Below are positions 5,338 through 36,784 of a DNA stretch of 64,000 nt, in pieces. The stretch lies in the sequence record KY499642.1, one strand, 5' to 3'. Position numbers and translations under genes: made by a program. The notes under the pieces were generated by a model. That model was not told the DNA's origin. It saw nothing but the letters and a program-made list of their open reading frames with translations, and made no database searches. Every line of letters starts with the position of its first letter. Position 1 is the first letter of the stretch.

Positions 5338-5528
5338 TCGCCTATAACCCTATTACTACAATTTGGAAAAAGCAAAACGCTTTAAGTAGCGCTTCAAACG
5401 AAGTCGGCAATGACGCCCACTGGTACCCGGACTGATGCTTCATTAACACTATGCTATAGATGTTAACAAGCGGATGTCCGGTACATCCCTTTTATTTTTT
5501 TGTCTCCAGAGTAAAAAAATATTCAGAT

Positions 5529-5544
5529 ATATATCATTATGGTG
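5529..5544 (+). promoter_or_regulatory. Candidate early (virion-RNAP) promoter motif
   Basis: ATATATCAT-TATG-GTG, one of six copies of ATAT(T/A)TCAT-N4-GTG upstream of operon starts, preceded by an A-tract. Confidence 0.6.
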
Positions 5545-5579
5545 AAGAAATCATCTAAACCTTTTAATGGGAGCTTACC

Positions 5580-6546: not shown

Positions 6547-6923
6547 TGAACTGGTTCGTACACGGTACAAATAAAACAATCACTGAAGAATGGGATCACT
6601 GTGAGCATTTGAAAGTGGGTCAGGTTGCACCTTACATGGTCGGCGAGCAAGACTCGTTCGGCCCTGTGGCTCGCATGGGGATGTGTAAGGAGTGTCACGA
6701 TAAGTATAAAGCGGAGCAGGATGAAGAGCTAGAGTACTGTCATGACTGTGGGCAGGAAAAGCCTATGAAGGAAATGCGCGAATGGCGTTGGTACGACTTC
6801 TATGCACCTCAGGGCGATGAACCACTGATGATTTGCGATGACTGTGCGGTCAAAGACAAACACAAAGAACGTGTGCGTAAAGACAATGAAGCGTACGAAC
6901 GTGAAATGGGCGATGAGTATTAA
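6546..6923 (+). CDS. Zinc-finger protein, unknown function
   Basis: CxxC pairs CKEC, CHDC and CDDC plus CEH. AAGGAG RBS. TAATG overlap with the upstream gene. Confidence 0.75.
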   Translation: MNWFVHGTNKTITEEWDHCEHLKVGQVAPYMVGEQDSFGPVARMGMCKECHDKYKAEQDEELEYCHDCGQEKPMKEMREWRWYDFYAPQGDEPLMICDDCAVKDKHKERVRKDNEAYEREMGDEY

Positions 6924-6935
6924 TTGGGAGCTAAC

Positions 6936-7469
6936 ATGAAAGACAAAGTAGAAACAATCATTCAGGGTAAACGATACGTAGCCCGTGCAGTACAACAACC
7001 AGATAACAAAGTTGCATTCCACATCTACGACTTTCCTGATATCAACGGTCTGCCAGAGTCACGCATTACTCAGCTGGCTAAAGAGTTCGGCTTAGAGAAC
7101 AGCAAGAACTTCATCTGGTATGGACGTGACCACTTCGAGAAGCTGTATGGACAACAGCAGCAAGCACGTACTGGAATGTCTGGACGTTCGGTTATCACTG
7201 AACTGACTAAGTGCACATCGCCATATGAACATCATGTTCCATTCGCACGCATTTCACACATACTGGGTGATCACTTCCGTGGTGTTAATCCATTGGAAGA
7301 CGATGTACTGAAACAAATCATCGAGCACACACAACAGCACGTAGAGCGTCGCGGTAAAGAAGTTGCACATCAAGGACATTCAATGTCTATCAATGAGCAG
7401 CGTTACTTACTGAGCATTCTGCGCAGTTTGTTGCCTGCACTGATACCAGTTCCGGCTGAAGAGAAATAA
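6936..7469 (+). CDS. Hypothetical protein
   Basis: GGGAG RBS before ATG 6936. ORF ends at a bidirectional terminator. Confidence 0.75.
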   Translation: MKDKVETIIQGKRYVARAVQQPDNKVAFHIYDFPDINGLPESRITQLAKEFGLENSKNFIWYGRDHFEKLYGQQQQARTGMSGRSVITELTKCTSPYEHHVPFARISHILGDHFRGVNPLEDDVLKQIIEHTQQHVERRGKEVAHQGHSMSINEQRYLLSILRSLLPALIPVPAEEK

Positions 7470-7503
7470 AAAGAGGAGGGCTAAGCCCTCCTTTCTTTTT
7501 TTG
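7470..7503. terminator. Bidirectional intrinsic terminator
   Basis: GGAGGGC-TAA-GCCCTCC flanked by A- and T-tracts, between convergent genes. Confidence 0.8.
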
Positions 7504-7505
7504 TC

Positions 7506-8813
7506 TTACGTGTAAACGTTAGCCGATAAGGCACGTAATAGGAAGTACAACATAAGTGCAGTACGGACTGAGGCAAGAGCAGAACTTGCACGCAGTGCGC
7601 TGTGACGCTTAGCATACTTCTCGATACGACTACGGAGACTTAATAGGCGCGGGTCAGTCGATTTAGATGACATGTACAAGGCACGCATCTTGTTCAAGAT
7701 AAAACCAACATCATGGAAACGGATACGTTCGCGAGCGATATAATCGAAAGCGTGCATCAGTGTGTCTTCCATAATCTCTTCCACCTCATCGCGTTTCTTA
7801 CCTGTTGGTGTTCGCGCAATAGAACGGAGGATATCTAACAGTGATTGTCTGGAGGTCGTTGACATCACATCCAATACCACATCAACGAGTTCTAACTTGA
7901 TAAAGCTAGAGTCGTTACCTGCTACATCGAGAAGATAAGTCTTCGCATTGTTGTAGGCACTGACTTGGTCACGGATGATCTTGTCTCCGTCCAACACCAC
8001 AGTGTTAGAAGTGGTTTCAATACGCAAGTTCCCCGAACGAACACGGTCAAGGATTTTGTATTGGTCTTTAATCGACTTACGGACACGTGTTGACATATCC
8101 GTTACAACGTACATGATGCGTTCATCATCATCGAACTTAACTAAGTCGCGATAGTGTTTGCCTTCTTTCGAAAGGAATGACTCAGCACGCCACTTTAACA
8201 CCTCACCCCAACTACCTAGTCGCTTAATAGCAAACTTCATAGTCAGAGCACTGTAGACGGCTTCTGCTGCCTCATTGTCTACAGGTTTATCAAAGTAGTG
8301 TGTGTAGATTGATGATAGGAAACGGAACTGAAGCATGACTAATGCTTCGACCATTGCTTCGTAAACAATCTTGTCACGTGGGTTGAGTTCATCGATACAC
8401 TTATGAATGAACCAAACGACGGATAGGTTGAAAGCATCCCCTGCAACTTTCCAGTCTTTGTTCACTGCCTTAACCGAGTGAATACACTCTTGTAAGTAAG
8501 CTTCATCAATCTGGAGTACTTCATCAAACCAACGGTCGCGGTCATTATCGTACCAACGAATGCGGTCTACACCCATTAGGTTACCGCCAAAGAAAGACAG
8601 ATGCTCCCCGCGTGACGCAATAGACTTGCTATAATTTATCACACGCTTGCACATACTAATGGAGGGACTTGTTCCTTCCACGGCTTTTATGAACGCATCA
8701 CGAATCGACGGAATTCTGCCGTCGTCAGAGTGAGCTTCTAAACCAACGATTGGCATTGTTCCAACTTCTTGGATCAAGTCAATCATGGCTAGAGTCGCTT
8801 TATTGAATTCCAT
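7506..8813 (-). CDS. Conserved phiKZ-like virion (head) protein, probably protease-processed
   Basis: ~435-aa helical ORF. Start ATG 8813 with GGGAG RBS. N-terminal VGLE|A resembles prohead-protease sites. The FFGGNLMGV block is recalled as conserved in this phage group. Confidence 0.6.
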   Translation of the reverse strand: MEFNKATLAMIDLIQEVGTMPIVGLEAHSDDGRIPSIRDAFIKAVEGTSPSISMCKRVINYSKSIASRGEHLSFFGGNLMGVDRIRWYDNDRDRWFDEVLQIDEAYLQECIHSVKAVNKDWKVAGDAFNLSVVWFIHKCIDELNPRDKIVYEAMVEALVMLQFRFLSSIYTHYFDKPVDNEAAEAVYSALTMKFAIKRLGSWGEVLKWRAESFLSKEGKHYRDLVKFDDDERIMYVVTDMSTRVRKSIKDQYKILDRVRSGNLRIETTSNTVVLDGDKIIRDQVSAYNNAKTYLLDVAGNDSSFIKLELVDVVLDVMSTTSRQSLLDILRSIARTPTGKKRDEVEEIMEDTLMHAFDYIARERIRFHDVGFILNKMRALYMSSKSTDPRLLSLRSRIEKYAKRHSALRASSALASVRTALMLYFLLRALSANVYT

Positions 8814-15428: not shown

Positions 15429-15535
15429 AGAACCCTCCTTCATCGCAGTCATAGCATGGCTTAAGCTTACGTAAATAATAACATAACAGCGATTCCTATA
15501 GGGGAGTTTGGCTATGAATAAAAGTATTGTCAGAC

Positions 15536-15551
15536 ATATTTCATCATAGTG
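15536..15551 (+). promoter_or_regulatory. Candidate early promoter motif driving the nine-gene array
   Basis: ATATTTCAT-CATA-GTG, 22 bp upstream of ATG 15573. Confidence 0.65.
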
Positions 15552-15572
15552 ATGAATCCTTGGAGATAATAA

Positions 15573-15926
15573 ATGCGACTTATAATTTTACAATTTGAAG
15601 TTGCACCTTTCTTAGACGAATATGAAAACAAATTTGGTGAATTACCAGATGGTTGCGAGATAAATGATTTTGCTGTAATGGTAATGCTTTCCATAATGCA
15701 TAGACATTGTATCTTGATGTTAACTGATGATGCTTTTCACACCTACGAGAAACGTGGGGTTGGATTTCGCAACATGGTGGATGACATCGTAGAGAACTTA
15801 GTCTTTGAGCCTGAACACTCTGCATTGTACCACATATCAGAATACGCTCGCACCTTCAGAGGTATACTAGCCATATCTAAAGTTCGTTTAAGAAGAAAAC
15901 GAACGTTTGAGGTGTACTGTGAATAA
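15573..15926 (+). CDS. Hypothetical protein, array member 1
   Basis: GGAG RBS. Pattern: N-terminal strand, helices, C-terminal strands. Confidence 0.7.
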   Translation: MRLIILQFEVAPFLDEYENKFGELPDGCEINDFAVMVMLSIMHRHCILMLTDDAFHTYEKRGVGFRNMVDDIVENLVFEPEHSALYHISEYARTFRGILAISKVRLRRKRTFEVYCE

Positions 15927-16593
15927 ATTTACATATAACATTGAACCATTCTACCAACAGGTTCGCGACTTTATCGCTAACCGTGCTGACCTGTTTACTG
16001 GTCTGGAAGAGATGTTTGATGATCCCGTCAACTTTGACCATGATCCGTCTAAACCACTATCGCTGTTTGAAGCGACAGAAAACCGCCGTGATATCACGGA
16101 GGAATATCTAGATAAGTTAGAGAGCTTCCAACGCGACCTGACTCAGGAACTCATTCATGCCGTTCTGTGTGAGTATTTCTACTCAATCCCAGAAGGGTAC
16201 GACAATCGTTTCTACATGCTAGGTAAACAGTCCATCAATCAGTGTCAGTATGCTGACGTGAAAACATGGTACAAGGTCTGTCGTGCGGCTGGACGACAAG
16301 ACGCGCATGTACTCCTGTTGGATGAAAACGAAAACGTTGAGGATAGCGTACCTATCGGAATCCGCAATGAAGACGTTCGCCGAATCTTCCACGAATTGTT
16401 TGTAGCATTCCTTTGTGAGCTACGACATGCCCTGCCTGATAACACATGGGCTACGGTAGATTTTAAGGTCAGTGGCAATACAATGACGCTAACCTTCGGT
16501 GAGGACTTAAGGCATGTTATCTTTGAACGTGAACACGGTACCGATAAATGGAAAGGGCCGTACTACCTTCCGACAGGAGAGATTATCGAATAG
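15919..16593 (+). CDS. Hypothetical protein, array member 2
   Basis: GAGG RBS and GTG 15919 overlapping the upstream stop. Acidic. Confidence 0.7.
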   Translation: MNKFTYNIEPFYQQVRDFIANRADLFTGLEEMFDDPVNFDHDPSKPLSLFEATENRRDITEEYLDKLESFQRDLTQELIHAVLCEYFYSIPEGYDNRFYMLGKQSINQCQYADVKTWYKVCRAAGRQDAHVLLLDENENVEDSVPIGIRNEDVRRIFHELFVAFLCELRHALPDNTWATVDFKVSGNTMTLTFGEDLRHVIFEREHGTDKWKGPYYLPTGEIIE

Positions 16594-16975
16594 TCGCGTA
16601 AGGTTAACAATTAAGGACATTTATTGTGGGGTTGAAGGCAAACTTGACGAGTTCGATTATCGTTACGATAGTACGGATGTTGAAGAGTTTGTCGCCTCAG
16701 TTTTGGACATGTATCTAGACACGGCTGACCGTGGATTTGGTAGAGCAGCTGTCGATATGATAGCAGCACACGAAATCTTTCTAGCACTCATGGAATCAAA
16801 AGACGCGAAGCGAGTATCGCGTACTCATTCACAACACGTAGTGCAGTTCATCTTGGCTGAATTGAACGACTACGTCAGAACGTTCGACATCGTTCGTGTG
16901 TATGACTACACCATTTACGGGACACAGTTGGTAATGGATTGTCTCCGTAGAATGCAGATAAGAGCTGTCGCTTAA
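16514..16975 (+). CDS. Hypothetical protein, array member 3
   Basis: 153 aa. Start uncertain (80-nt overlap with member 2). Confidence 0.6.
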   Translation: MLSLNVNTVPINGKGRTTFRQERLSNSRVRLTIKDIYCGVEGKLDEFDYRYDSTDVEEFVASVLDMYLDTADRGFGRAAVDMIAAHEIFLALMESKDAKRVSRTHSQHVVQFILAELNDYVRTFDIVRVYDYTIYGTQLVMDCLRRMQIRAVA

Positions 16976-16989
16976 CACAGGAGCTAATA

Positions 16990-17361
16990 ATGCACAAACG
17001 TAAACGCAGTGCGTATGTGTTTAATTTGAGTGTCTTACAGGACCTTAGTGAAGACCTCATGGAGTACGACATCTATGAGTGTTTTGGTGAAAATATTGAT
17101 AACTATGATTTCATCCGTACACTAATTAAGGCATCTCTATCAACACGCAATGAGTTAGAAGCACATCTTAAAGCAAGTATGTTCTTCTTCCAATACATCG
17201 ACAAGTCTGAACAGGATCATTGTCGCCGTTTAGTAAACGAAATCATGCAACTACCAGATTACGAGTATCTCATTGATATCATTCGTAACTCGGTGGGTAG
17301 TCGTGCGTATCGGTACCCGTCGGTTGAAGTTAAAGGTGAGAGATTGGTGGTGAAGGTGTAA
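16990..17361 (+). CDS. Hypothetical protein, array member 4
   Basis: AGGAG RBS. Ends in SVEVKGERLVVKV, a predicted beta-hairpin. Confidence 0.7.
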   Translation: MHKRKRSAYVFNLSVLQDLSEDLMEYDIYECFGENIDNYDFIRTLIKASLSTRNELEAHLKASMFFFQYIDKSEQDHCRRLVNEIMQLPDYEYLIDIIRNSVGSRAYRYPSVEVKGERLVVKV

Positions 17362-17768
17362 TGGATATTGTGGTTGGTATTGTGCCATATCACAGACGTC
17401 TAGCTTTAGCCATCGACGATTACTACGATGATATCGTTCAGGGTAATAGCACGACAACGGCTGTGAGGCGTGCAGATATATACACTATGTTAACGATCAT
17501 TATGAAAGTGTCAGTGGTTGACTATATGTCGGATATTGCATCAATGGCATCCGAGTCCATATACCAACACTTGAACCTTAAGTATGGGGCATCCATGCTT
17601 ATGATTTCACACATGGTCAATGAGATAATAGAATCTGACGAGTATAGGGAAATACGAAATCGGATTAACACTAGCGTTGCACAAACATCTGACCGACACT
17701 TAGGTGTCAATGATGTAACCCTTACTTGGAACATGAGTAAGGTTGTGATTAACGTTGCCAGACGATGA
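17361..17768 (+). CDS. Hypothetical protein, array member 5
   Basis: TAATG coupling. Ends in DVTLTWNMSKVVINV. Confidence 0.7.
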   Translation: MDIVVGIVPYHRRLALAIDDYYDDIVQGNSTTTAVRRADIYTMLTIIMKVSVVDYMSDIASMASESIYQHLNLKYGASMLMISHMVNEIIESDEYREIRNRINTSVAQTSDRHLGVNDVTLTWNMSKVVINVARR

Positions 17769-18255
17769 GGCGATTATGAGAGTAACGGTTCGTATACATG
17801 ATTTTAATGACTACTTTATGGAGCTTATTCCATTCAGTCAAGCGTTGGACAACACGCGTATTGTCCAGTGTCTAATTGATGACCTAAACGGTCTACTTAA
17901 TTTAAGTCAAGCGGTTGCCAGAGAGGAGCCTGTTGACTATCGAAAGATTTCAAATACGTTAGAGTACCTGACGAAAGACGCTGAGAATTTCATCAGTGAA
18001 GCTGGTATGGTTCACATGAAGAACGCTGTTGGTGACCTGATGAAAGTGTTCTTTGAAGAGCTTCGTGGGTACGCTCGTTGGACTAACATGCGTTTCCGCT
18101 ATGTTCGTCACCAAGAGTCAAGTTCTGGTTCGTGGACTATACGTATGGATGCTGAAGACCAATTTGATTACAATGATAGAGTTTGTGATCTTATGATGGA
18201 ATTGGCAGAACGATTACTGGAGCAATTCTGTGTTAAAGATGACCGTAGGTATTAG
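17755..18255 (+). CDS. Hypothetical protein, array member 6
   Basis: 166 aa. The true start may be the internal ATG (MRVTVRI) after GAGG. Confidence 0.7.
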   Translation: MPDDEAIMRVTVRIHDFNDYFMELIPFSQALDNTRIVQCLIDDLNGLLNLSQAVAREEPVDYRKISNTLEYLTKDAENFISEAGMVHMKNAVGDLMKVFFEELRGYARWTNMRFRYVRHQESSSGSWTIRMDAEDQFDYNDRVCDLMMELAERLLEQFCVKDDRRY

Positions 18256-18643
18256 CGGACTTCTAAGATTAATCGAACGCAAGCTGAAAAAGTTTCGCCT
18301 ACCTACAGGTGGGATTACCAGAAAAGAGGAGCAGCAGATAATGGAGCTGCTCATCTTGCGCTTTATTTGTCGTGACGATGCCCGCATTAGAAGACTGTCA
18401 TCACCAACTGTAATCCGTGTGTTTGATAAGCTTACCAAAGGCGATAATAACTCTTCAGGAGACTGGGAGTTGTTAGATGAGCTGCATTATTACGGTGAGT
18501 TGGTGGGTGATATGGTGATGAGATATTACGACTACGAAGGTGATGGAATTGGCTATAACTGTGAAGTACATTACAGCCTACGTAGACGAAGAATAAGCAT
18601 AGAGGGAACATCCGAATGTCTAAGAAGAAAATTAGGCAGGTAA
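18230..18643 (+). CDS. Hypothetical protein, array member 7
   Basis: 137 aa, overlapping both neighbours. Ends in CEVHYSLRRRRISIEG. Confidence 0.6.
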   Translation: MLKMTVGISGLLRLIERKLKKFRLPTGGITRKEEQQIMELLILRFICRDDARIRRLSSPTVIRVFDKLTKGDNNSSGDWELLDELHYYGELVGDMVMRYYDYEGDGIGYNCEVHYSLRRRRISIEGTSECLRRKLGR

Positions 18644-19353
18644 GAGTTTGTCTGAAAGAACACATGCGTGATATTGAGGATATCGTTGCTAACATGTGTG
18701 ATAAACTGAGTGACTTGCCAGATAGCTTTAGACGCCCTATTGAAGAGGGCGTTGTGTACATGGCGTTGTTTGACTCTGGTTACAATGACGAAGATTTCTG
18801 GGAGAATGTCGCTGACTACCTAACCGAAGTGTTTAGCCATTACTTCGAGAGCCAGACCGACTTCACAGATACAATGCCAAGAAGTAAGTTGACACGTCTC
18901 GCACCAACTAGACTTGATATTCTAGATGGAACGGATACTGACGATGATCTATTAATTTCTGACATTGATGATAATGATGGTGAAAGGATTGAGTACGTTG
19001 TCGGAGTTAGTGATGAGATTCCTCACCACTACCACTGGGATAGCCGTGAAGATATGGACTACACCGCTGAGATTGTTGCAGAACAAGTAGCGGAGATGTT
19101 CGCAGAGTACGACTTAGCATCTGATGATGACTTCGCTGAACTAGCGTGCGTGATTCGTGATGCTGCCCTTGGTGACCAATACACTGTCAAGAACGTTGAC
19201 CGTTTCACTATTGATATGAACCGTAAGAAACTTATGGTGGGTATCGATACGGGTTCTCGGTTAGCCAATATGGATATGTCACTTTTTAATCGATTTGAGG
19301 TAGACGATGCGTTATCTGTTCGGAATGGATCGCGAAGTCGTCGAGCATCTTAG
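18616..19353 (+). CDS. Hypothetical protein, array member 8 (very acidic)
   Basis: GAGGG RBS, 245 aa. Ends in RFTIDMNRKKLMVGI plus an RS-rich tail. Confidence 0.7.
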   Translation: MSKKKIRQVRVCLKEHMRDIEDIVANMCDKLSDLPDSFRRPIEEGVVYMALFDSGYNDEDFWENVADYLTEVFSHYFESQTDFTDTMPRSKLTRLAPTRLDILDGTDTDDDLLISDIDDNDGERIEYVVGVSDEIPHHYHWDSREDMDYTAEIVAEQVAEMFAEYDLASDDDFAELACVIRDAALGDQYTVKNVDRFTIDMNRKKLMVGIDTGSRLANMDMSLFNRFEVDDALSVRNGSRSRRAS

Positions 19354-19879
19354 AGAGGCTTGGGATTACCTTGATATGGAGTACAACTTAGATTTATGGC
19401 CTACAGTAAAGCCTACGATTGAGTTGTGTCTCCATACCACCGTACATGAATTGATTTCATTGCACTATATACTAGACTACGATTTAGAAGAGTATCTTCA
19501 CAATTGTAACTGGCACCACGTTGATGATTACATCGGGGCTATCTTTGATTCAGGTAGACACGAGGAACTCTTCGACGATGTGATTGATGCTCTAGAGTCA
19601 AACGTATACGCGGGTAACAAGCTTGCCGTATCTGTCAGCCGTAAAAGCCGATGTATACGTCATGCTAACATCCTAGATGAGCCTGTCGAATATGACTACG
19701 ATGATTTACAGCGATCGTTGGCTAATGCAGTCACTGATGCAATCATAGACGCACTTAGAACAGTAGAGATACTTGACTATTTGCCTAAGGTTGAAAATGA
19801 ACTAGCTCCAAGATATCGTATGCCGATACAGGATGTTGATATCAACTTCCGTAAACTAAAGCTTACAATACGACACTAG
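19307..19879 (+). CDS. Hypothetical protein, array member 9
   Basis: GAGG RBS, 190 aa. Ends in DVDINFRKLKLTIRH. Confidence 0.7.
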   Translation: MRYLFGMDREVVEHLREAWDYLDMEYNLDLWPTVKPTIELCLHTTVHELISLHYILDYDLEEYLHNCNWHHVDDYIGAIFDSGRHEELFDDVIDALESNVYAGNKLAVSVSRKSRCIRHANILDEPVEYDYDDLQRSLANAVTDAIIDALRTVEILDYLPKVENELAPRYRMPIQDVDINFRKLKLTIRH

Positions 19880-19888
19880 GAGATAGCC

Positions 19889-20308
19889 ATGGCCGATATC
19901 AGTGGACTTAAAATGGGACAGGTTGTCTCGTTTAAGCTGCACACTAAACTGATCTCCGACATCTTTACTAACGTGAAGGTGCTCGGTATCGTTGGCTACG
20001 ATGTAGCAACCGCATTTGAAGATGTGGCTGCTGTACATGCTAACATCTACTCAACCCTCCCAGAGGGTACACCAGAGAACGCTGAAGACTACGACTACTT
20101 GTATGTTGAGACAATCGACAAGCAACGTAAGGTGGTGGGTGTTCCTTGGATTAAAGACCCAATCTCAGTAGTTGACTCAGCTACAATTCGAGTCACACTG
20201 AATAATGCTACAACCTCAGACGTTGAGAAGGTCCGCAATGCACTAAACGCATACGGCTACATCGACCTGAGTATTGAAGTGTTAAGTGGGTCTAGTATAC
20301 AGTCCTAG
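19889..20308 (+). CDS. Conserved chimallivirus SH3-like beta-barrel protein upstream of DNA polymerase
   Basis: AGGAG RBS. GQVVSFKL...VKVLGIV...YLYVET...VVGVPWI strand pattern. Fold is inferred. Confidence 0.6.
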   Translation: MADISGLKMGQVVSFKLHTKLISDIFTNVKVLGIVGYDVATAFEDVAAVHANIYSTLPEGTPENAEDYDYLYVETIDKQRKVVGVPWIKDPISVVDSATIRVTLNNATTSDVEKVRNALNAYGYIDLSIEVLSGSSIQS

Positions 20309-20336
20309 TAATAATTTAAATGGAAGGCTATAATGT

Positions 20337-20483
20337 GAACAAATCTATCTCCCAATTAGTTTGTTCTATTGTGAGTCGCATTTCAGTCCCTGCAAATGCG
20401 ATTTACCTGTCCACTAAATTTTCTAGGACTTATGTCCTCCTTATGAAGCCAGCACCCGTTTTGGGTGTTGGTATTTTTTTTTT
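20337..20483 (+). ncRNA. Candidate ~145-nt sRNA with C-rich (anti-SD-like) loops
   Basis: TATAAT at 20329-20334, hairpins at 20337-20366 and 20376-20401, CCTCCTTA at 20436-20443, intrinsic terminator at 20449-20483, no ORF with an RBS. Confidence 0.45.
20449..20483 (+). terminator. Intrinsic terminator
   Basis: CCAGCACCC-GTTTT-GGGTGTTGG followed by TA and a T10 tract. Confidence 0.85.
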
Positions 20484-20555
20484 GTCTTAATGTAAAAAGT
20501 AATGCTGCTGCTTTTGATTTGTAGAACTAACTAAAACAAATTCCCAGAGGCAAAA

Positions 20556-22727
20556 ATGTCATTATTCTTACGACCGGACGAAGAATACGTTCGTGAAATA
20601 AATGTCATGGAAGGCTACATGAAACAGTTGGCTGAATACCTGCACATACAGACAGGTAAGCCGATGGATGTGGTTAAACCATGGTTAAAGAAAGAATTCG
20701 AATCTGATGAGGGTCGATTCAAGTTTGAGTCCCCTATTGCAGATATCAACGTACGTGACCCACAAACTGGTGACCGTAAAGCAACACGTATCTCAGTGGC
20801 TAAGCTACTGGCTATGACGGAAAAGAATGACATCATCACGTCACCGTCACTGACCTTTTATACGCCAGCAAAGAAGAAGCGCTCACTGCTGTCTGTCTTC
20901 ATCGATGAAAACATCGCTAAGCGTGCAAAAGTAAAGAAAGAGATGTTCGCAGCTCAGGCTGAAGGTGATGAGGTAAAAGCTCAGAACAAAAAGAACGAAC
21001 AGAACTCATTTAAGACATTGAACAACGCAACCTCTGGTGCACACTCGTCTCCATATACCCTGCTGTTCAATAAGTCTACTCACTCATCACTAACATCAAC
21101 TTGTCGTTCGGCTACCTCGTATGGTAATGCAAACAACGAGAAGTTACTGGCAGGCTCACGTCACTACTGGATGCCGGGTATTGTTATCAACAATATCTTG
21201 TCTACTATTACCCTGACAGACTTCGATGCGTTCCAAGGATGTGTTGATGAATACAACCTGCACTACCCAACAGCAGAAGAGACAATGGAGTGTATTGAAT
21301 ACTCTACTCATCTGTTCTGGAATAACGTAGCAGCTATGGATCATATCCGCGACTTCGTGGGTAAGCTTACTCCGATTCAACGCGCTGCGTTCGTCTACAT
21401 CGGCGACCTATACCACCTACGTAAACACAACCCTGATGTGGTTCGTGGTTGGATTGGTTCAATGATTGAAGAGACAAATGAAAAGGTTCCCGTAGAGGAA
21501 GTGGAGCACGTCGAGAAAGTTACCGATGGTGACTTGACTGCTCTAGTCGCACTATTACGTGCAGACATTGTCGGCCCTCGAAACCTCCGTAAAGTAAAAG
21601 AGCAAGACTTTGAAGATTACCGTATTCTAATGTCTACGTGTCTTAAAGTTCGAGAAGCATGTGAAAAGTACTCAACGCTGATTCGTGAGATTATGACCAC
21701 GAAGAACGTGCCTGCCTCGATTGCTCGATTACCTGACACTATTCGTCGTGTATCACTGGTATCGGATACTGACTCAACAATGGCTACAGCTCAACGATGG
21801 TCAGAGTGGTTCTGTGGTGAGATGACGGGTAAGACTGCGGACAACGTTGCAGATACAATGATCTACATTGCAACGCAAAACATCGCGCACATGATGGCAC
21901 GTATGTCTACGCAGATGGGGGTGGAGAAACAGTACTTGCATCGCTACTCAATGAAGAACGAATTTAAGTTCAGTTCTTTCGCACTAACAAATAAAGCGAA
22001 GCATTACTTCTCACTAATCACTTCTCAAGAGGGTACTCTTTTCGAAGATCCTGAATTGGAAGTAAAAGGTGTGGCGTTACGCACGTCAAACATTCCACCA
22101 ATCATCATGAACGAGTTCCGTGCGACGATTCGTGAGTTGTCACGTTTGGTTATGGTAGGGGAAGATATTGAGATTGTTCCGCTGCTAGAGCGTGTGGGTG
22201 ACATTGAGCACAGCATCGTACGCTCGGTACACAATGGTGACTACCAGTACTTGAAGACTGGTCAGGTGAAAGATAAGACAGCCTACTCTAAACCAGAGCA
22301 GTCTAACTTCATCTACTGGGAGTGGTGGGAAACAACGTTCGGTCCTAAATACGGTTCGGCGGGTTCACCGTCATATAGCGTAGTTAAGATTTCTGTTGAC
22401 CTTGGAAACAAGACATTGATTAAACGATGGATTGATAACATGAAAGACAGGGAGTTGGCGGGACGTATTCAGGAATGGCACCTAAGAAACCCGAAACGTA
22501 AATTCACGCAGTTACTACTACCGGAAACAGTTGTAGCAACCAATGGTATTCCAAAAGAGATTTTGGACATTGCGGATTACCGTCGAATCATCTTTGCATC
22601 AGTTGAACCATACTACCATGTGTTAGAATGTTTCAAAGTGATGATGATTGACAAGAACCGTACGCGAATGGTTTCGGACTTCTATGGTGAACCAATTGAG
22701 AGTGAACTAACGGAGAGTACTGCATAG
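20556..22727 (+). CDS. Family-B DNA polymerase, polymerase half (phiKZ gp50-like)
   Basis: Motif B region QNSFKTLNNATSGA, motif C VSDTDST, downstream KHYF and EVKGV. No exonuclease or motif A in this ORF. Confidence 0.85.
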   Translation: MSLFLRPDEEYVREINVMEGYMKQLAEYLHIQTGKPMDVVKPWLKKEFESDEGRFKFESPIADINVRDPQTGDRKATRISVAKLLAMTEKNDIITSPSLTFYTPAKKKRSLLSVFIDENIAKRAKVKKEMFAAQAEGDEVKAQNKKNEQNSFKTLNNATSGAHSSPYTLLFNKSTHSSLTSTCRSATSYGNANNEKLLAGSRHYWMPGIVINNILSTITLTDFDAFQGCVDEYNLHYPTAEETMECIEYSTHLFWNNVAAMDHIRDFVGKLTPIQRAAFVYIGDLYHLRKHNPDVVRGWIGSMIEETNEKVPVEEVEHVEKVTDGDLTALVALLRADIVGPRNLRKVKEQDFEDYRILMSTCLKVREACEKYSTLIREIMTTKNVPASIARLPDTIRRVSLVSDTDSTMATAQRWSEWFCGEMTGKTADNVADTMIYIATQNIAHMMARMSTQMGVEKQYLHRYSMKNEFKFSSFALTNKAKHYFSLITSQEGTLFEDPELEVKGVALRTSNIPPIIMNEFRATIRELSRLVMVGEDIEIVPLLERVGDIEHSIVRSVHNGDYQYLKTGQVKDKTAYSKPEQSNFIYWEWWETTFGPKYGSAGSPSYSVVKISVDLGNKTLIKRWIDNMKDRELAGRIQEWHLRNPKRKFTQLLLPETVVATNGIPKEILDIADYRRIIFASVEPYYHVLECFKVMMIDKNRTRMVSDFYGEPIESELTESTA

Positions 22728-23888: not shown

Positions 23889-25748
23889 ATGGCATTTAAT
23901 ACTGGCGAAAATAAGACTCAAGACAAAGCGGCTAACACTGGTCGTAAAGACAATGAGAACAAAGGTCGTAAAGACGAAGGTCGTCGTTCTGATGAGCGCG
24001 CTCGTCGCAACCTTGTATCTCGTGCTTGGTCGCCTGGTTTGTCTGAGCAGGGCCGCAGCGCAGAATTCGTTAAGCGCGCGAAAGAGTTCCTTGAAGATCA
24101 AGGTAACAAAAACACAATCATCCTACAGCCTGACAACGAGCTGGCTCGTGAGCTGTCGGATTCATTCGGTTTCGTAATCTACGGTACTCACGTAGACTCT
24201 GACCTGATGTGGCACCTACTGGTATTTGAATCTCAACTTAGCCCTGTTGCTATGGAAGAAATCAAAGACCGTAACCGTCGCTACTCTCGTGACGAGAAAA
24301 TCTTCGACTTCGAAACTACTTCAGATGCAATCAGCGATGATCTGGTTTCTGATATCGAAGAGTGGCTACGTCGCAACGTTGAAGTTGACGGTGAGCTGTA
24401 CTTCACTAACGCAACTGTAGTTCCAGTTGAAGTAGACCTTGAGTCTGATGCGGTAGTTCAGCTACTGGGCTTCGATGCAGAAGATTCAAACATCCTGCTG
24501 TCTGACACTGACGAACCATTCAGCTCTAAGATGCTGGCTGACCGTTCAGTACTGAAAGCGAAGTTGAACTTCACTTCACTTGACGACAAGCGTGACCTTA
24601 CTTCAATGCCACTACGTTCTGACCTGCAAATCAGCATCTCTGAAAATCTGCGTGACAACAAAGTCAGCATGATTCGTTCAGCAGGTGGTCAGCGTACTCT
24701 GGTTGAAATGGATGCGTACGTGAATGCTCGTTGGGTTGGTCATGATGAAGCAGACCGCGATGACGAAATCGATCCAGCATGCTACGTACCAGAAGTAGTA
24801 ATGACTCAAAGCAACCCTTACCACAACGATGTGTACGGCGGTAACTTCGAGCGCTTCTTCCTTGGTCTAGCTGCACTAATGTACACCAAAGATGGTGACG
24901 TGTGGATGAAAGGCTTCGAGTCTTCACTTCACGGTGGTGGTCGCGTATCTAGCCTTGCTTACGGTATGGACCCAGAAGTATTCCCAGACGGTAAAATCCC
25001 ATCTGACATCAGCATCGTAGACGAAGACCCAACTGAAACTGGTAACTGGCTACGTAAAATCTTCTTCCGTTCAGAGCGCGGTCGTTCTATCCCAGTAGAA
25101 TTCGCAGTACTGATTAAAGAAGGTGGTGTTGGCTACGCAACTAACAAGCTTCTGCTTGACGTTGCAGACGACAACCCAGATGCACTGGACAAACTGATCA
25201 ATGTACTGGACAACCTAACTGATGGCGTGTCTCAGGACTACCTTGACATCCGTGACTACACTGATGTTATCTCTGGTCAGGTTCGTGTACCAATGGGTTA
25301 CTTCAAAGATGCTGACGGTGAGCGCGCTGGCGAGTTCATCGATACTCAGTTCGTAATGGAGCGTCTGAAAGACAACTACCCTGAGAAGTTGGATGACTAC
25401 TTCGAGTGTGTTCAGATTGATGATCGTGAATTCGACCACGAAGAAGCGATGACCAAACTACTGGACATCTACCAGCTGGTTACTGATGGTCAATTCAAAC
25501 TGAAAGGCTTCGGTACTAAACTGTACATCAACCCAGACTTCCTAGACGGTCTAGCTAAAGCTATCAAAGCTAAAGACGCTGGCCTGAACATGGAGCTGGA
25601 AGCAAACGTAGAAGTGAACTTCCGTCGCGGTCGTCGTTCACAAGGCCGTCGTGCATCAGCAGGTCTTGTAGACTCACCGCTTGGTCGCAACCGTCGCACC
25701 TACTCAGGTTCGCGTCGTCGCGGTTCACGCACTCGCTACCGTCGTTAA
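23889..25748 (+). CDS. chmA: Chimallin, major phage-nucleus shell protein (phiKZ gp54-like)
   Basis: 619 aa at the invariant position immediately upstream of the nvRNAP beta' N-terminal gene. Own promoter and terminator, high-expression codon bias, disordered N- and C-termini. Assigned by synteny, size and recalled features, not by alignment. Confidence 0.82.
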   Translation: MAFNTGENKTQDKAANTGRKDNENKGRKDEGRRSDERARRNLVSRAWSPGLSEQGRSAEFVKRAKEFLEDQGNKNTIILQPDNELARELSDSFGFVIYGTHVDSDLMWHLLVFESQLSPVAMEEIKDRNRRYSRDEKIFDFETTSDAISDDLVSDIEEWLRRNVEVDGELYFTNATVVPVEVDLESDAVVQLLGFDAEDSNILLSDTDEPFSSKMLADRSVLKAKLNFTSLDDKRDLTSMPLRSDLQISISENLRDNKVSMIRSAGGQRTLVEMDAYVNARWVGHDEADRDDEIDPACYVPEVVMTQSNPYHNDVYGGNFERFFLGLAALMYTKDGDVWMKGFESSLHGGGRVSSLAYGMDPEVFPDGKIPSDISIVDEDPTETGNWLRKIFFRSERGRSIPVEFAVLIKEGGVGYATNKLLLDVADDNPDALDKLINVLDNLTDGVSQDYLDIRDYTDVISGQVRVPMGYFKDADGERAGEFIDTQFVMERLKDNYPEKLDDYFECVQIDDREFDHEEAMTKLLDIYQLVTDGQFKLKGFGTKLYINPDFLDGLAKAIKAKDAGLNMELEANVEVNFRRGRRSQGRRASAGLVDSPLGRNRRTYSGSRRRGSRTRYRR

Positions 25749-25772
25749 TCGACAGTAGTAAAATAAAGAAGA

Positions 25773-25800
25773 TGGGGAGCATTGCTCCCCACTTTTTTTT
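25773..25800 (+). terminator. Intrinsic terminator after chmA
   Basis: TGGGGAGC-ATT-GCTCCCCA followed by C and T8. Confidence 0.9.
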
Positions 25801-25821
25801 AGTGTGTAACCGTCAGACTAA

Positions 25822-27369
25822 TTGGGAGATAAACTTATGACGCTTGGACAACCACGTCCCGATTGGGAATCGAATGGCATCAGTCTTGACATCTATTCAT
25901 TAGAAAAAGATTTTGATGAACTAAAAATCGAACCAATCATCATTAATGACGTAGCTGATGAGTTCAGCGTCGGTCGCACTATCGATGTAATCAATGATCT
26001 GATTCGCGTTAGTTACGACAGTGATGAACTAAACACGGTGCCTTCCTGTGAAAAGGGATGTACTACAGGTGCCTTTAACTACGACCCAGTCCACCCTATC
26101 ACATGTGATGTGTGTGGTACTACGGTCAAATCCGTCATCAACCAACCACTCTTACCACAGGTGTGGATGAGAGTACCAAAGAAAGTGGATGCGTTTATCC
26201 ATCCGCGTATTTACCAACTGTTCTCTGAGTACTTCAGAAACAACTACTTCGATTTAATCGAGTATCTCACTAACCCAACATATGTAGTTCCTCGTCACAA
26301 TAACTACCGAGGCGGCAAACCTGAAATTGAGAAGTTGCTGGACTTCTTAACGGATTGCAAGGTAGAACGTGGCATTAACTACTTCCATCGTAACTTTGAC
26401 GAGTTGATGGACTTGTTGTTAATTCAGAACCCGAAACTGTTCACCTATAAATACGGTACAGCGGATCGTGCTACACGTGTCTGTGCGAAGTTTAAATACT
26501 TCCTCGACTTATATCGTGACAGCATCTTTACTCGCTACCTACCGTTTCCGTCGAAACTCATCATGGTTTCAGAACGTGGTGGTACGGCAGAGTTCATTGA
26601 CCCGAACATGAAAGATGCATTCGATGCTCCTAAGACAATTGCGTCATTGGAAACTCGTGCAACTAAGCCAAGCTACAAAGTAGTGCAAGCTGAAACTGTA
26701 AAGGTCATTAAACTGATGGGTGCCTACTTCAATGGGTACTACAGTAAGACGTGTTCTGGTAAGACAGGTATGTTCCGTGGACAACATGGTGGCTCACGTG
26801 GCTTCTTCACTGGGCGTGCAGTAATTGCACCTCTAGCGATGGAACACGAGTACGATGAAATCCACACGCCGTGGTCATGGTCAGTGACTATCTTCTCCGT
26901 ACACCTTGAGAACAAGCTGCTACGTCTAGGATATAATCCGCGTCAAATCATGCGGAAGATTGATAAGGCTACAGTTCGTTACGACAAGATGATTCATGAA
27001 CTCTTAAATGAGATCATTGCAGAATGTCCAGAAGGTGGCTATCCAGTATCGATGCTGCGTAACCCAACGTTACGTCGTGGTTCGAACCAGTACTTCCGTA
27101 TTACGAAGATTCTGACGAACGTTCATGACAATGCTATCATGATGTCGGTACTCGCAATCAAAGACCCTAACGCGGACTTTGATGGTGACCAATTGCAGGT
27201 TAAACTGTTGGTGGATAATAAAGAGAAGCGTCAGTTCTCGCGTCTAGCATCGCACCTGAACATTATGGATACAGACCATCCAAACCGAATCGGTGGGCAC
27301 ATCACGTTCCACCCTGAAGTAACAACCATGGCAAACAACTACTTGTCACACTACAGAAAGGCAGCATAA
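25822..27369 (+). CDS. Non-virion RNA polymerase beta' N-terminal (catalytic) subunit (phiKZ gp55/56.1-like)
   Basis: NADFDGDQL active-site loop, Zn-binding CEKGC...CDVC, GRAVIAP and RNPTL motifs. Confidence 0.95.
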   Translation: MGDKLMTLGQPRPDWESNGISLDIYSLEKDFDELKIEPIIINDVADEFSVGRTIDVINDLIRVSYDSDELNTVPSCEKGCTTGAFNYDPVHPITCDVCGTTVKSVINQPLLPQVWMRVPKKVDAFIHPRIYQLFSEYFRNNYFDLIEYLTNPTYVVPRHNNYRGGKPEIEKLLDFLTDCKVERGINYFHRNFDELMDLLLIQNPKLFTYKYGTADRATRVCAKFKYFLDLYRDSIFTRYLPFPSKLIMVSERGGTAEFIDPNMKDAFDAPKTIASLETRATKPSYKVVQAETVKVIKLMGAYFNGYYSKTCSGKTGMFRGQHGGSRGFFTGRAVIAPLAMEHEYDEIHTPWSWSVTIFSVHLENKLLRLGYNPRQIMRKIDKATVRYDKMIHELLNEIIAECPEGGYPVSMLRNPTLRRGSNQYFRITKILTNVHDNAIMMSVLAIKDPNADFDGDQLQVKLLVDNKEKRQFSRLASHLNIMDTDHPNRIGGHITFHPEVTTMANNYLSHYRKAA

Positions 27370-31915: not shown

Positions 31916-31929
31916 AACAAATTTTAAAT

Positions 31930-31945
31930 ATATTTCATATAAGTG
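31930..31945 (+). promoter_or_regulatory. Candidate early promoter motif
   Basis: ATATTTCAT-ATAA-GTG upstream of the sigma-like/picA operon. Confidence 0.7.
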
Positions 31946-31962
31946 GAATTAAGCTTTGGGAG

Positions 31963-33549
31963 ATGTTTGACGTGCACTTAGTATTAAAAAATGAAACTAT
32001 GTGTCTAGTCCACGATGGACAAGAATTAGACTTCGGTCAGTTTAAACCGAAGAAACCAAATAGTGAAGACCCGGCGGTCAAGAAACTCTCAATGACTCAG
32101 TATGTGAAGAAACTTTCAGATGCGATGTTCTGCGAGATAAATGGCTACTGGAAAACACTTCCTAAGGAGGAACTCGACGAGCTATTCGAACTGTATGAAA
32201 TTGCACACGAAGATATCATTGAGTCACCGACTCAGTCAGAACGTTACACCAACGTTCGTGAAGGTATCAACAAAATCGTAGACCGCTACCATCGCTTTGA
32301 AGATATGGCGGACTTCATGAAGGATAAACCAATTATCCCTACTGACAATGTGAAAGAATCATTCGACAGTAGCATTCATGACACAATCTCAAGACAGACA
32401 ACTTACATCATGTCTGAGTATCGTGACTTGGCAATCCTGACAGTCATCCTGCGTTCCGTGGCACCTATCTGGAACTTGACTAGCCGCATGACTACCGTGG
32501 CTAATGAAAAGGCTGGTAAGGTTTACCACGAAATTGAAATGTTCAGCATGTTGGCAAACACTGACCTAATCGACTGTGAAGCATTCCGTCGACTAGAAGA
32601 GTTTGTTAATGCGCAATGGGACAAGTTTGAGACAGGGCGAAATAAGCAGGAAGCTAAGAACTCGATTCTTAGTTCTGTTGTAGCTGGCTTAGGTACATCT
32701 GACATTCCTAACTACTTGTTAGCAACGTCGGTAGTAAACAAGCTGGCAGTGCGTGAAGTTAACACGTTCAGAGATGAAGGTGACTTAATTACTCACGTGT
32801 ATCAGCGTATCGATACAGAGGTGAAGAAGCTGGCGGTGAAGTTCGCTCGGTTGAAGCCAAAGGTCGATAAGCGAATGGGTGAGGATGAAGATAAGACGGG
32901 TTACTTAGAATCATTCCGCACTCGTGAAATGGTACGCCGAGATGTACACATGTTAGTGCAGTACTATCTGTACGACTACCGTGCAGCTAAGCGTGCTTTA
33001 GATGAGGAGATTCCTGCATCGCTTGTTAAGGCGTGTATTGAATCGTTCCAAGAGTACAAGCCCGTACCGATTCGTTCTGACCAGTGCGTAATCGTACAAT
33101 GGGTATTGGGTAAGATTGTTCATCCTCGTGCAATCCCACACATTGATCGTACTGCTATGATTAATGCAATGGGTATTACACAGGCGGCTTTGATTCATTG
33201 GCGTATGCGAGACATCGCAGTGTTGATGAGTTCAAAACCTGCACCATCTGATCCAGACTCTATCCTTATCACAACGCCTTTTGATGCGGTAACTACGGAT
33301 GTGCGTCAGCGCCTTGCTGAAACGTACCCTTACTACCGACATTCAAAGACGACTACATCAAGACGACAGATGTGTCCTGGCCTGCAAGCGTTGGAAGCAT
33401 ACACTAAGATGTTTGCTGACCAAGAATGGGATTTGAATTGCACGAAAAGAATAAGCGAAGACTTACGTCAAGAACCGGGCCGATTCAAACCATCTCGCAG
33501 ACTCAAGAACGAATTAGCAGAACTGCTAATCAAAATCAATCGTCGTTAG
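31963..33549 (+). CDS. nvRNAP sigma-like promoter-specificity subunit (phiKZ gp68-like)
   Basis: ~525-aa helical protein between chmC and picA. Start is ATG 31963 or GTG 31972 (GGGAG RBS). Confidence 0.72.
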   Translation: MFDVHLVLKNETMCLVHDGQELDFGQFKPKKPNSEDPAVKKLSMTQYVKKLSDAMFCEINGYWKTLPKEELDELFELYEIAHEDIIESPTQSERYTNVREGINKIVDRYHRFEDMADFMKDKPIIPTDNVKESFDSSIHDTISRQTTYIMSEYRDLAILTVILRSVAPIWNLTSRMTTVANEKAGKVYHEIEMFSMLANTDLIDCEAFRRLEEFVNAQWDKFETGRNKQEAKNSILSSVVAGLGTSDIPNYLLATSVVNKLAVREVNTFRDEGDLITHVYQRIDTEVKKLAVKFARLKPKVDKRMGEDEDKTGYLESFRTREMVRRDVHMLVQYYLYDYRAAKRALDEEIPASLVKACIESFQEYKPVPIRSDQCVIVQWVLGKIVHPRAIPHIDRTAMINAMGITQAALIHWRMRDIAVLMSSKPAPSDPDSILITTPFDAVTTDVRQRLAETYPYYRHSKTTTSRRQMCPGLQALEAYTKMFADQEWDLNCTKRISEDLRQEPGRFKPSRRLKNELAELLIKINRR

Positions 33550-36744: not shown

Positions 36745-36768
36745 GATGGCCTCTATTTAATTTAAGAT

Positions 36769-36784
36769 ATATTTCATTGAAAGG
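36769..36784 (+). promoter_or_regulatory. Candidate early promoter motif (variant)
   Basis: ATATTTCAT-TGAA-AGG upstream of nvRNAP beta. Confidence 0.55.

Follow-up and report, generated by a model that had tools for sequence, protein, structure and literature searches.

A conserved structured RNA at the 3' end of an early operon of Vibrio phage pVa-21, a candidate small RNA directed against ribosome sites of polymerase subunit mRNAs

Between an early operon and the DNA polymerase gene of Vibrio phage pVa-21 (KY499642.1, 231,998 bp) lies a conserved RNA element whose C-rich hairpin loop is complementary to an extended ribosome-site motif of the phage's own genes. Judged by sequence comparison, we put the probability at roughly one half that the element is a trans-acting anti-ribosome-site small RNA that would silence early translation, chiefly of polymerase subunit mRNAs. 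The observed basis for this proposal consists of conservation, structure, covariation, ranked complementarity to ribosome sites, over-representation of the motif, and the co-occurrence of RNA and motif.

The window is the whole stretch of 64,000 nt that was analysed; coordinates below are window positions unless stated otherwise, and the position in KY499642.1 is the window position + 167,998. pVa-21 is a phiKZ-like nucleus-forming jumbo phage; its chimallin gene is found at 23889-25748 and is followed by four genes for subunits of the non-virion RNA polymerase. The RNA element is located in a 247-nt gap between the SH3DP gene and the DNA polymerase gene. SH3DP is the final gene of a nine-gene early operon (15573-20308), so that the element forms the 3' end of this operon. 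The features of the locus are:

15532-15551, plus strand: early promoter AGACATATTTCATCATAGTG of the nine-gene operon, fitting the strict pattern [AC]ATATWTCAT-N3-4-RGTGRA
19889-20308: SH3DP gene (PF20287), upstream of the element
20326-20337, plus strand: conserved 5' block GGCTATAATGTG, consensus GsyTATAnTGTG, kept in 9 of 10 distinct relatives
20337-20366, plus strand: hairpin 1, 7+3-bp stem and 9-nt loop UCUCCCAAU (20348-20356), the proposed seed
20346-20363, plus strand: segment UAUCUCCCAAUUAGUUUG, 18-bp complement (17 Watson-Crick pairs and one G-U pair) of 25814-25831
20373-20404, extendable to 20371-20406, plus strand: hairpin 2, long stem and small loop, with double changes in relatives
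20425-20438, plus strand: hairpin 3, AGGAC-UUAU-GUCCU, with covariation seen by eye
20441-20483, plus strand: linker UUAUGAAGCC, intrinsic terminator (terminator scan; stem 20448-20472) and 10-U run
20479-20555, plus strand: conserved promoter-like block and DNA polymerase leader, TTGTCT..TGTAAAAAGTAA..ATTTGTAG..GAGG, kept in all relatives
20556-22727: divergent family-B DNA polymerase gene (PF20286), downstream of the element

All sequence features that an earlier note on this DNA had listed for 20329-20483 were found in place, including TATAAT at 20329-20334 upstream of hairpin 1, the pairing of AGGAC (20425-29) with GUCCU (20434-38) and a strong terminator at the 3' end, composed of the stem 20448-20472 and 10 T. 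The plus strand reached a minimum free energy of -55.1 kcal/mol, compared with -31.3 ± 4.0 kcal/mol for 200 dinucleotide shuffles (z = -5.96), and the loop of hairpin 1 had an unpaired probability of 0.87-1.0. The 3' end has the composition of the small-RNA type, i.e. a terminator, a U tail of at least 6 and an upstream single-stranded A/U-rich stretch. At the other end, the final G of the 5' block GGCTATAATGTG is the first base of hairpin 1, and the 17 nt directly upstream of the block are variable among the relatives. The block is possibly a start signal or a processing signal; as a recurrent promoter, GCTATAATGTG or TATAnTGTG was searched for in the 232 kb genome and gave a single occurrence.

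The possibility of a small protein-coding gene was rejected. No ORF with an RBS is present, as the earlier note had stated: the sole ORF, 20320-20490 (56 aa), is without a Shine-Dalgarno (SD) sequence, and in relatives (JHP1101, run X5) it shows mostly non-synonymous changes and frame-shifting indels, a non-coding substitution pattern. A tRNA/tmRNA search of the window returned none, and the Rfam search gave no family at threshold, only a sub-threshold match to Qrr and one chance match to an HIV stem-loop.

The promoter-like block at 20479-20555 lies 3' of the terminator, outside the RNA, and is present even in phages that are without the RNA element. A block of the form TTTTTTTGTCT-N4-5-GTAAA was seen right after terminator U tracts at 20479-20524 and also at 5495-5521 and 7496-7520; before the polymerase gene it extends as TGTAAAAAGTAA..N14..ATTTGTAG. 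This block probably represents a second promoter class.

GenBank contained one relative at the DNA level, pVp-JHP1101 (JHP1101), and further relatives were gathered by searches with the flanking proteins. These comprise contigs near pVa-21 (L274/L294-296, L278 and L279-281) and the groups L282/L293, L084 (the same phage as L008 and L003), L083/L292 and L283/L291; in all of them the gap between SH3DP and polymerase genes measures 205-270 nt. Five phage lineages retain the element, the terminator and three hairpins all showing compensatory changes, so that the check on relatives proposed in the earlier note came out in favour of stems and a C-rich loop conserved with covariation. The 5' block GsyTATAnTGTG, the linker UUAUGAAGCC and the terminator were likewise kept. 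Identity to JHP1101 was 93% for the intergenic region aligned with short flanks and 88.5% for the intergenic region alone; over a wider region consisting mostly of the flanking genes it was lower, 84.5%. One metagenome variant had 7 substitutions in 247 nt, all 7 in linkers, and its flanking coding DNA differed by 5-8% at third codon positions.

Covariation was counted over seven distinct aligned sequences on the RNAalifold structure, the consensus of which contains hairpin 1, hairpin 2 and the terminator. In these sequences 95.2% of the cells at consensus pairs were paired. Double-sided pair changes numbered 9 against 2.4 ± 1.2 in shuffles, a count that 0 of 500 shuffles matched, and fell to 1-3 when the pairing partners were slid. 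All 10 pairs of the terminator stem were kept, 2 of them via double changes, and the stem of hairpin 1 showed both G-U pairs and double changes among the relatives. Hairpin 2 had a G-C to A-U replacement in JHP1101 and two adjacent double changes in L278, and in L282 and L084 its sequence was wholly replaced with the hairpin form retained. Hairpin 3 stands outside the formal pair count because MAFFT misaligns it; by eye, the variants GGAC/GUCC, UGGA/UCCA, GGAUU/AAUCC and GGGAU/AUCUC were found. The G-U pairs together with the U tract indicate that the plus strand, as RNA, is the selected molecule.

The loop of hairpin 1 was invariant in 7 of 7 aligned sequences (AUCUCCCAAUU). For the diverged lineages L083, L084 and L283 the comparison relied on inspection by eye and on duplex energies, and recognisable forms of the loop were present in them as well: AUCUCCCAGU in L084, CUCUCCCCAAUU in L283 and ACUCUCCUGUG within a hairpin loop of L083.

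These comparisons changed the place of the anti-SD sequence. The earlier note had proposed a small RNA that displays CCUCCUUA (20436-20443) as an anti-SD sequence and acts as a trans-acting translational regulator or a mimic of the 16S rRNA tail. The conserved, structured, non-coding element with a C-rich anti-SD loop was borne out, with the loop of hairpin 1 as the site and not CCUCCUUA. At the position of CCUCCUUA the relatives carry CCACCUUA, AUCCCUUA, CCCCACUUA and AUCUCACUUA, where CCACC, AUCCC, CCCCAC or AUCUCAC take its place; CCUCCUUA varies since these bases, the CCUCC included, simply form the 3' side of the covarying hairpin 3. The suggested conformational switch, in which GGAC would pair with the upstream GUCC at 20409-12, did not survive either: the pairing exists in pVa-21 and the upstream partner is not conserved in the relatives.

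Among the sequencing runs listed as containing this DNA, none is recorded as RNA; four runs were compared with the region, all of them contigs and probably DNA, and one of the four covered the element. An exact 20-mer gave no match in IMG/VR, and a search of IMG/VR with the SH3-domain protein found nothing. The degenerate pattern GCTATANTNTG..TCTCCCA gave 111 matches there, one of which could be tied to a relative (L195, the L003 contig); the others were assumed to be chance. The sister phage L004/L005 (IMG/VR 3300035493_000111 and 3300035491_000193), with 68% polymerase identity, is without the element, and its SH3DP stop codon is directly followed by the terminator.

Both strands of the whole window were searched for helices with the RNA, excluding the RNA's own antisense strand. 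The longest ungapped helix, 18 bp (17 Watson-Crick pairs and one G-U pair), joins 20346-20363 to 25814-25831; it runs through the invariant loop and covers -23 to -6 of ATG 25837 on the sense strand. The downstream gene encodes a homologue of PHIKZ055 (E 2.4e-70; PF00623, phrog_2987, NADFDGD motif), the β' N-terminal subunit of the non-virion RNA polymerase. In 13 of 300 trials with shuffled RNAs a helix of 18 bp or longer turned up somewhere in the window, and helix length alone is therefore only modestly significant. The predicted target sites referred to below are:

25814-25839, plus strand: β' N-terminal subunit (510 aa), ribosome site CAGACUAAUUGGGAGAUA with start codon 25837; predicted primary target
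31955-31974, plus strand: PHIKZ068-like fifth polymerase subunit, ribosome site UUUGGGAGAUGUUUGAC with GUG start 31972; predicted secondary target
6917-6938, plus strand: extended ribosome-site motif ATTAATTGGGAGCTA before a 177-aa gene, 12-bp helix with the loop, rank 11 genome-wide

For ranking, ungapped helices and the 30-nt hairpin were used, as the full 111-nt RNA gives inflated, internal-loop-rich scores in duplexfold. Among the ribosome sites of 281 genes of the full genome, which are crude gene calls, the β' site ranked first with -27.6 kcal/mol (mean -9.7, sd 3.7). When the 16S rRNA tail was used as control, the same site ranked 100 of 281; thus the top rank of β' does not come from a strong SD sequence. 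Cofolding left a net -19.4 kcal/mol after the cost of opening hairpin 1.

The complementarity to the β' site was followed through the relatives. JHP1101 retains the pVa-21 helix less one end pair; its position 20346 is changed and the target is not, an uncompensated difference near the seed. Helices of 18 bp with 2 G-U pairs were found in L294, of 10 + 4 bp in L293 (AUUAUCUCCC / GGGAGAUAAU), of 11 bp in L084 and of 8 + 4 bp in L292 (AUUACUCUCCUGU / AUAGGAGAUUAAU), and the pairing of L291 was bipartite (GCACUC / GAGUGC and UCCCCAA / UUGGGGA). In four other lineages, represented by 14.5-kb loci, the β' site ranked first among the 13-14 ribosome sites of each. In the two most diverged lineages both partners had changed, and in a cross-lineage matrix each ribosome site found its best match in its own RNA. 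The matrix as a whole deviates from a clean diagonal, since the L292 seed pairs more strongly with the site of L293 than with that of L292. The matches of the diverged lineages (7-13 bp, one bipartite) may be over-fitted because duplexfold ignores accessibility and allows flexible registers, and some affinity for ribosome sites is automatic because the loop contains an anti-SD core. Altogether, a conserved and accessible seed was found whose complementarity to the target is kept across the relatives. In L004, which is without the RNA, the β' gene has a plain GGAGG site.

The second-longest helix, 16 bp between 20368-83 and the sequence around the AUG of the operon's first gene (15571-86), was treated as chance because JHP1101 has changed the RNA side with the target side unchanged. 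Between the chimallin and β' genes (25757-25836) no early-promoter motif was seen, only a terminator (GGGGAGCAUUGCUCCCC + U8) and then AGTGTGTAAC; the β' subunit would therefore be expressed by read-through or from a TGTG-type start resembling that in front of the RNA.

The complement of the loop is a 13-mer, TAATTGGGAGATA, which is an over-represented extended ribosome-site motif. Allowing at most one mismatch, the coding strand has 9 copies in pVa-21 and 6 in JHP1101; the reverse strand has one match per genome in these two phages, which is the RNA itself, and the motif read backward, as a control, matched once in pVa-21 and not at all (0) in JHP1101. Chance alone would give about 0.004 exact copies in a genome of 232 kb. 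Five exact copies were located in KY499642.1, at record positions 37779, 64315, 86634, 91014 and 193817. The checked copies sit 3-9 nt upstream of CDS starts, and pairing with 16S rRNA accounts, on our reading of the sequences, for only about 5 of the 13 motif bases. Regarding the targets, the earlier note had looked to generic GGAG/GGGAG sites: the loop does complement ribosome sites, and what it complements is an extended phage motif, not generic GGAG.

In three related jumbo phages, including the 185 kb L004/L005 contig, TAATTGGGAGATA was absent, which may reflect differing base composition. Two motif-free phages for which the region upstream of the polymerase gene was read, L004 and L006, are both without the RNA element.

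The predicted targets include a second polymerase subunit. The PHIKZ068-like (gp68-like) gene (E 4e-21) lies behind an early promoter at about 31926-31945, ranked 6 of 281 genome-wide and took rank 2 in three of the four other lineages; hence two of the high-ranking predicted targets belong to a single enzyme, the non-virion RNA polymerase. Apart from polymerase subunits, PHROGs and PDB searches with the motif-bearing genes returned nothing informative, and most of these genes, including two of about 740 aa, are without recognisable function.

The motif was also connected with early expression. With the strict early promoter defined as [AC]ATATWTCAT-N3-4-RGTGRA, a UGGGAG ribosome site was present in 5 of 10 genes behind such a promoter versus 18 of 270 others (Fisher p 5e-4), and near-copies of TAATTGGGAGATA were found on other early leaders. 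The early genes include the gp68-like and gp71-like polymerase subunit genes. These two most likely start at GUG, 9-10 nt past UGGGAG (31972 and 36822, respectively), and translation probably does not begin at the first in-frame start codons, 31897 and 36777. Early-promoter-like motifs were observed 25-70 nt upstream of the first genes of operons, including the gp68-like gene, the gp71-like gene and the nine-gene array; sites are 5524-5547, 15532-15551, about 31926-31945 and about 36764-36784, with more elsewhere in KY499642.1.

A simpler explanation is a passive 3' UTR, in which hairpins and terminator would do no more than end and stabilise the mRNA of the early operon and insulate that mRNA from the promoter of the polymerase gene, and the complementarity would be a by-product of a C/U-rich loop. 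The element does lie exactly between the operon stop codon and the terminator, and the sister phage L004/L005 manages with the terminator alone. A passive 3' UTR, however, needs no invariant 9-nt loop that outlasts changes in the stems and the replacement of hairpin 2. It also leaves unexplained the 18-bp match with its rank of 1 among 281 genes and rank 1 in four other lineages, as well as the identity of the loop complement with the over-represented 13-mer TAATTGGGAGATA. We therefore consider this explanation unlikely.

Action in cis appears quite improbable, whether the 3' UTR folds back onto ribosome sites of its own polycistronic mRNA, as in the autoregulation by OppZ and CarZ, or gates read-through into the DNA polymerase gene in the manner of an attenuator or riboswitch. 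The operon has GGAGAUA-type sites of its own, GGAGAUAA at 15562 and AGGAGAUAG at 19876 (rank 23), but these ribosome sites pair far more weakly than the β' site. In the minimum-free-energy folds, for pVa-21 as well as JHP1101, hairpins 1 and 2 seem to be enclosed by a helix, yet in 5 of 6 relatives this closing helix is mismatched at candidate pairs, its best free version shifts register, and it is absent from the RNAalifold consensus. A three-way junction or riboswitch was thus rejected, the closing helix P1 being without covariation support: as the helix fails the comparative test, the riboswitch-like reading was dropped. Rfam gave no riboswitch match, and the polymerase gene is preceded by a conserved promoter-like block of its own, past the terminator. 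A decoy for proteins or ribosomes (a mimic of the 16S tail, or a platform on which an RNA-binding protein would sit) or a DNA-level element (an origin or a minus-strand relic leader) could draw on CCUCCUUA in pVa-21 and on the minus-strand loop, a perfect copy of the ribosome-site motif, but is very improbable, with CCUCCUUA not kept in relatives, a structure made plus-strand-specific by its G-U pairs and U tract, and, on the minus strand, a frame of only 4 codons after the motif and no early promoter upstream.

Under the reading that we favour, a small RNA acting in trans on ribosome sites, an RNA of about 147 nt (roughly 20337-20483) with three hairpins, terminator and U tail would arise in one of two ways, by cleavage of the early operon's 3' UTR or by initiation at the TGTG before hairpin 1. 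Its open C-rich loop UCUCCCAAU would nucleate on the extended ribosome-binding motif UAAUUGGGAGAUA, and the duplex would zip onward into the 3' arm of hairpin 1, cover the SD sequence and block 30S binding. The mRNA of the β' N-terminal subunit of the non-virion RNA polymerase would be the strongest target, followed by the gp68-like subunit and about a dozen other genes, many of which come first in early operons. The RNA would then be the counterpart of an early-gene translational shut-off factor and would hold back production of the phage polymerase. The discrete transcript, the place of its 5' end, the direction of the effect (repression) and any role of Hfq are what we infer here.

With regard to the two possible origins, the stretch past the SH3DP stop codon is A/U-rich, which bears on processing from the 3' UTR. 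A σ70 promoter for the RNA was rejected: a scan found no plus-strand promoter here, and no -35 element is present. TATAAT cannot be its -10 box: such a hexamer would stand 5-8 nt upstream of the transcript start, but only 2 nt separate the end of TATAAT from G20337, and all 7 sequences keep this first base of hairpin 1 paired with C20366. TGTG precedes or begins hairpin 1 in every lineage (as TTTG in L084 and TATG in L283), a likeness of four bases only. It recalls the late promoter of the non-virion RNA polymerase of phiKZ, T-3 A T G+1, which overlaps the start site (PMC7598289). A start at TGTG would mean that the polymerase itself transcribes the RNA that brakes its translation.

From here a wider and rather doubtful picture can be drawn, in which nucleus-forming jumbo phages might have a dedicated RNA regulon. 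The motif UAAUUGGGAGAUA would be an "address" that marks early mRNAs, those of polymerase subunits among them, and one small RNA, possibly made by the target polymerase from a TNTG start, would close early translation; this would constitute negative feedback between transcription in the nucleus and translation in the cytoplasm.

Among the closest known small RNAs are RNAIII and RsaE of the Gram-positive S. aureus, C-rich-loop anti-SD RNAs in which an unpaired loop pairs with the Shine-Dalgarno sequence and blocks initiation, one seed serving many targets. Like them, the pVa-21 element has a C/U-rich unpaired hairpin loop complementary to SD regions. Whereas their seeds are short UCCC sequences against the generic SD of the host, the complement in pVa-21 is 13-18 nt long and directed at an extended phage-specific motif; furthermore, the element is encoded by a virulent nucleus-forming phage, its predicted targets are the phage's own genes, and there is no sequence homology. 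OppZ, CarZ, MicX and FarS are Hfq-dependent small RNAs of the Vibrio host derived from 3' UTRs, and OppZ and CarZ act on their own operon. The pVa-21 element resembles these in its place at the end of an operon, in sharing the operon's terminator and U tail, in an upstream A/U-rich stretch that RNase E could cut, and in its predicted pairing with ribosome sites; unlike the phage element, they are host RNAs. In T4, the early protein RegA shuts down translation of many early mRNAs by recognising a sequence that their initiation regions share. In pVa-21 the recogniser would be an RNA acting by base pairing instead of a protein.

Membership in the quorum-regulatory Qrr family of Vibrio small RNAs (RF00378) was rejected. 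The match at 20383-20481 scored 23.7 bits against a gathering threshold of 50 (E 0.26 in a 3 kb search) and consisted mostly of the terminator, the conserved Qrr 5' stem and seed being absent. The two share a similar size, several stem-loops followed by a terminator, and the Vibrio setting, and we judged the match to be a chance resemblance in architecture.

Among virulent phages, phiKZ, PAK_P3 and other Pseudomonas phages have conserved short UTR-associated ncRNA candidates (Wicke 2020, PMC8244752; Putzeys 2024, PMC10914365). Those candidates have expression evidence, derive from 5' or 3' UTRs and end at terminators (PMC8244752, PMC10914365), and none of the virulent-phage ncRNAs, including those of phiKZ, has an assigned target or mechanism (PMC8244752, PMC10914365, PMC13282480). 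No sequence similarity was found between them and the pVa-21 element. By comparison, the element has a specific predicted regulon known from sequence alone, which provides a concrete seed, ranked targets led by two polymerase subunits, and a motif that defines the regulon. According to PMC12571901, as cited in PMC13282480, synthetic antisense oligomers against ribosome sites silence phiKZ genes; as far as that citation goes, antisense masking therefore works in a nucleus-forming phage. If our reading is true, the element would define the first small-RNA regulon of a nucleus-forming phage and would explain the timing of early-protein shut-off despite the physical separation of transcription and translation. 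It would then parallel T4 RegA, with an RNA in place of the protein, and be a natural equivalent of the antisense knock-downs that synthetic oligomers now provide in such phages.
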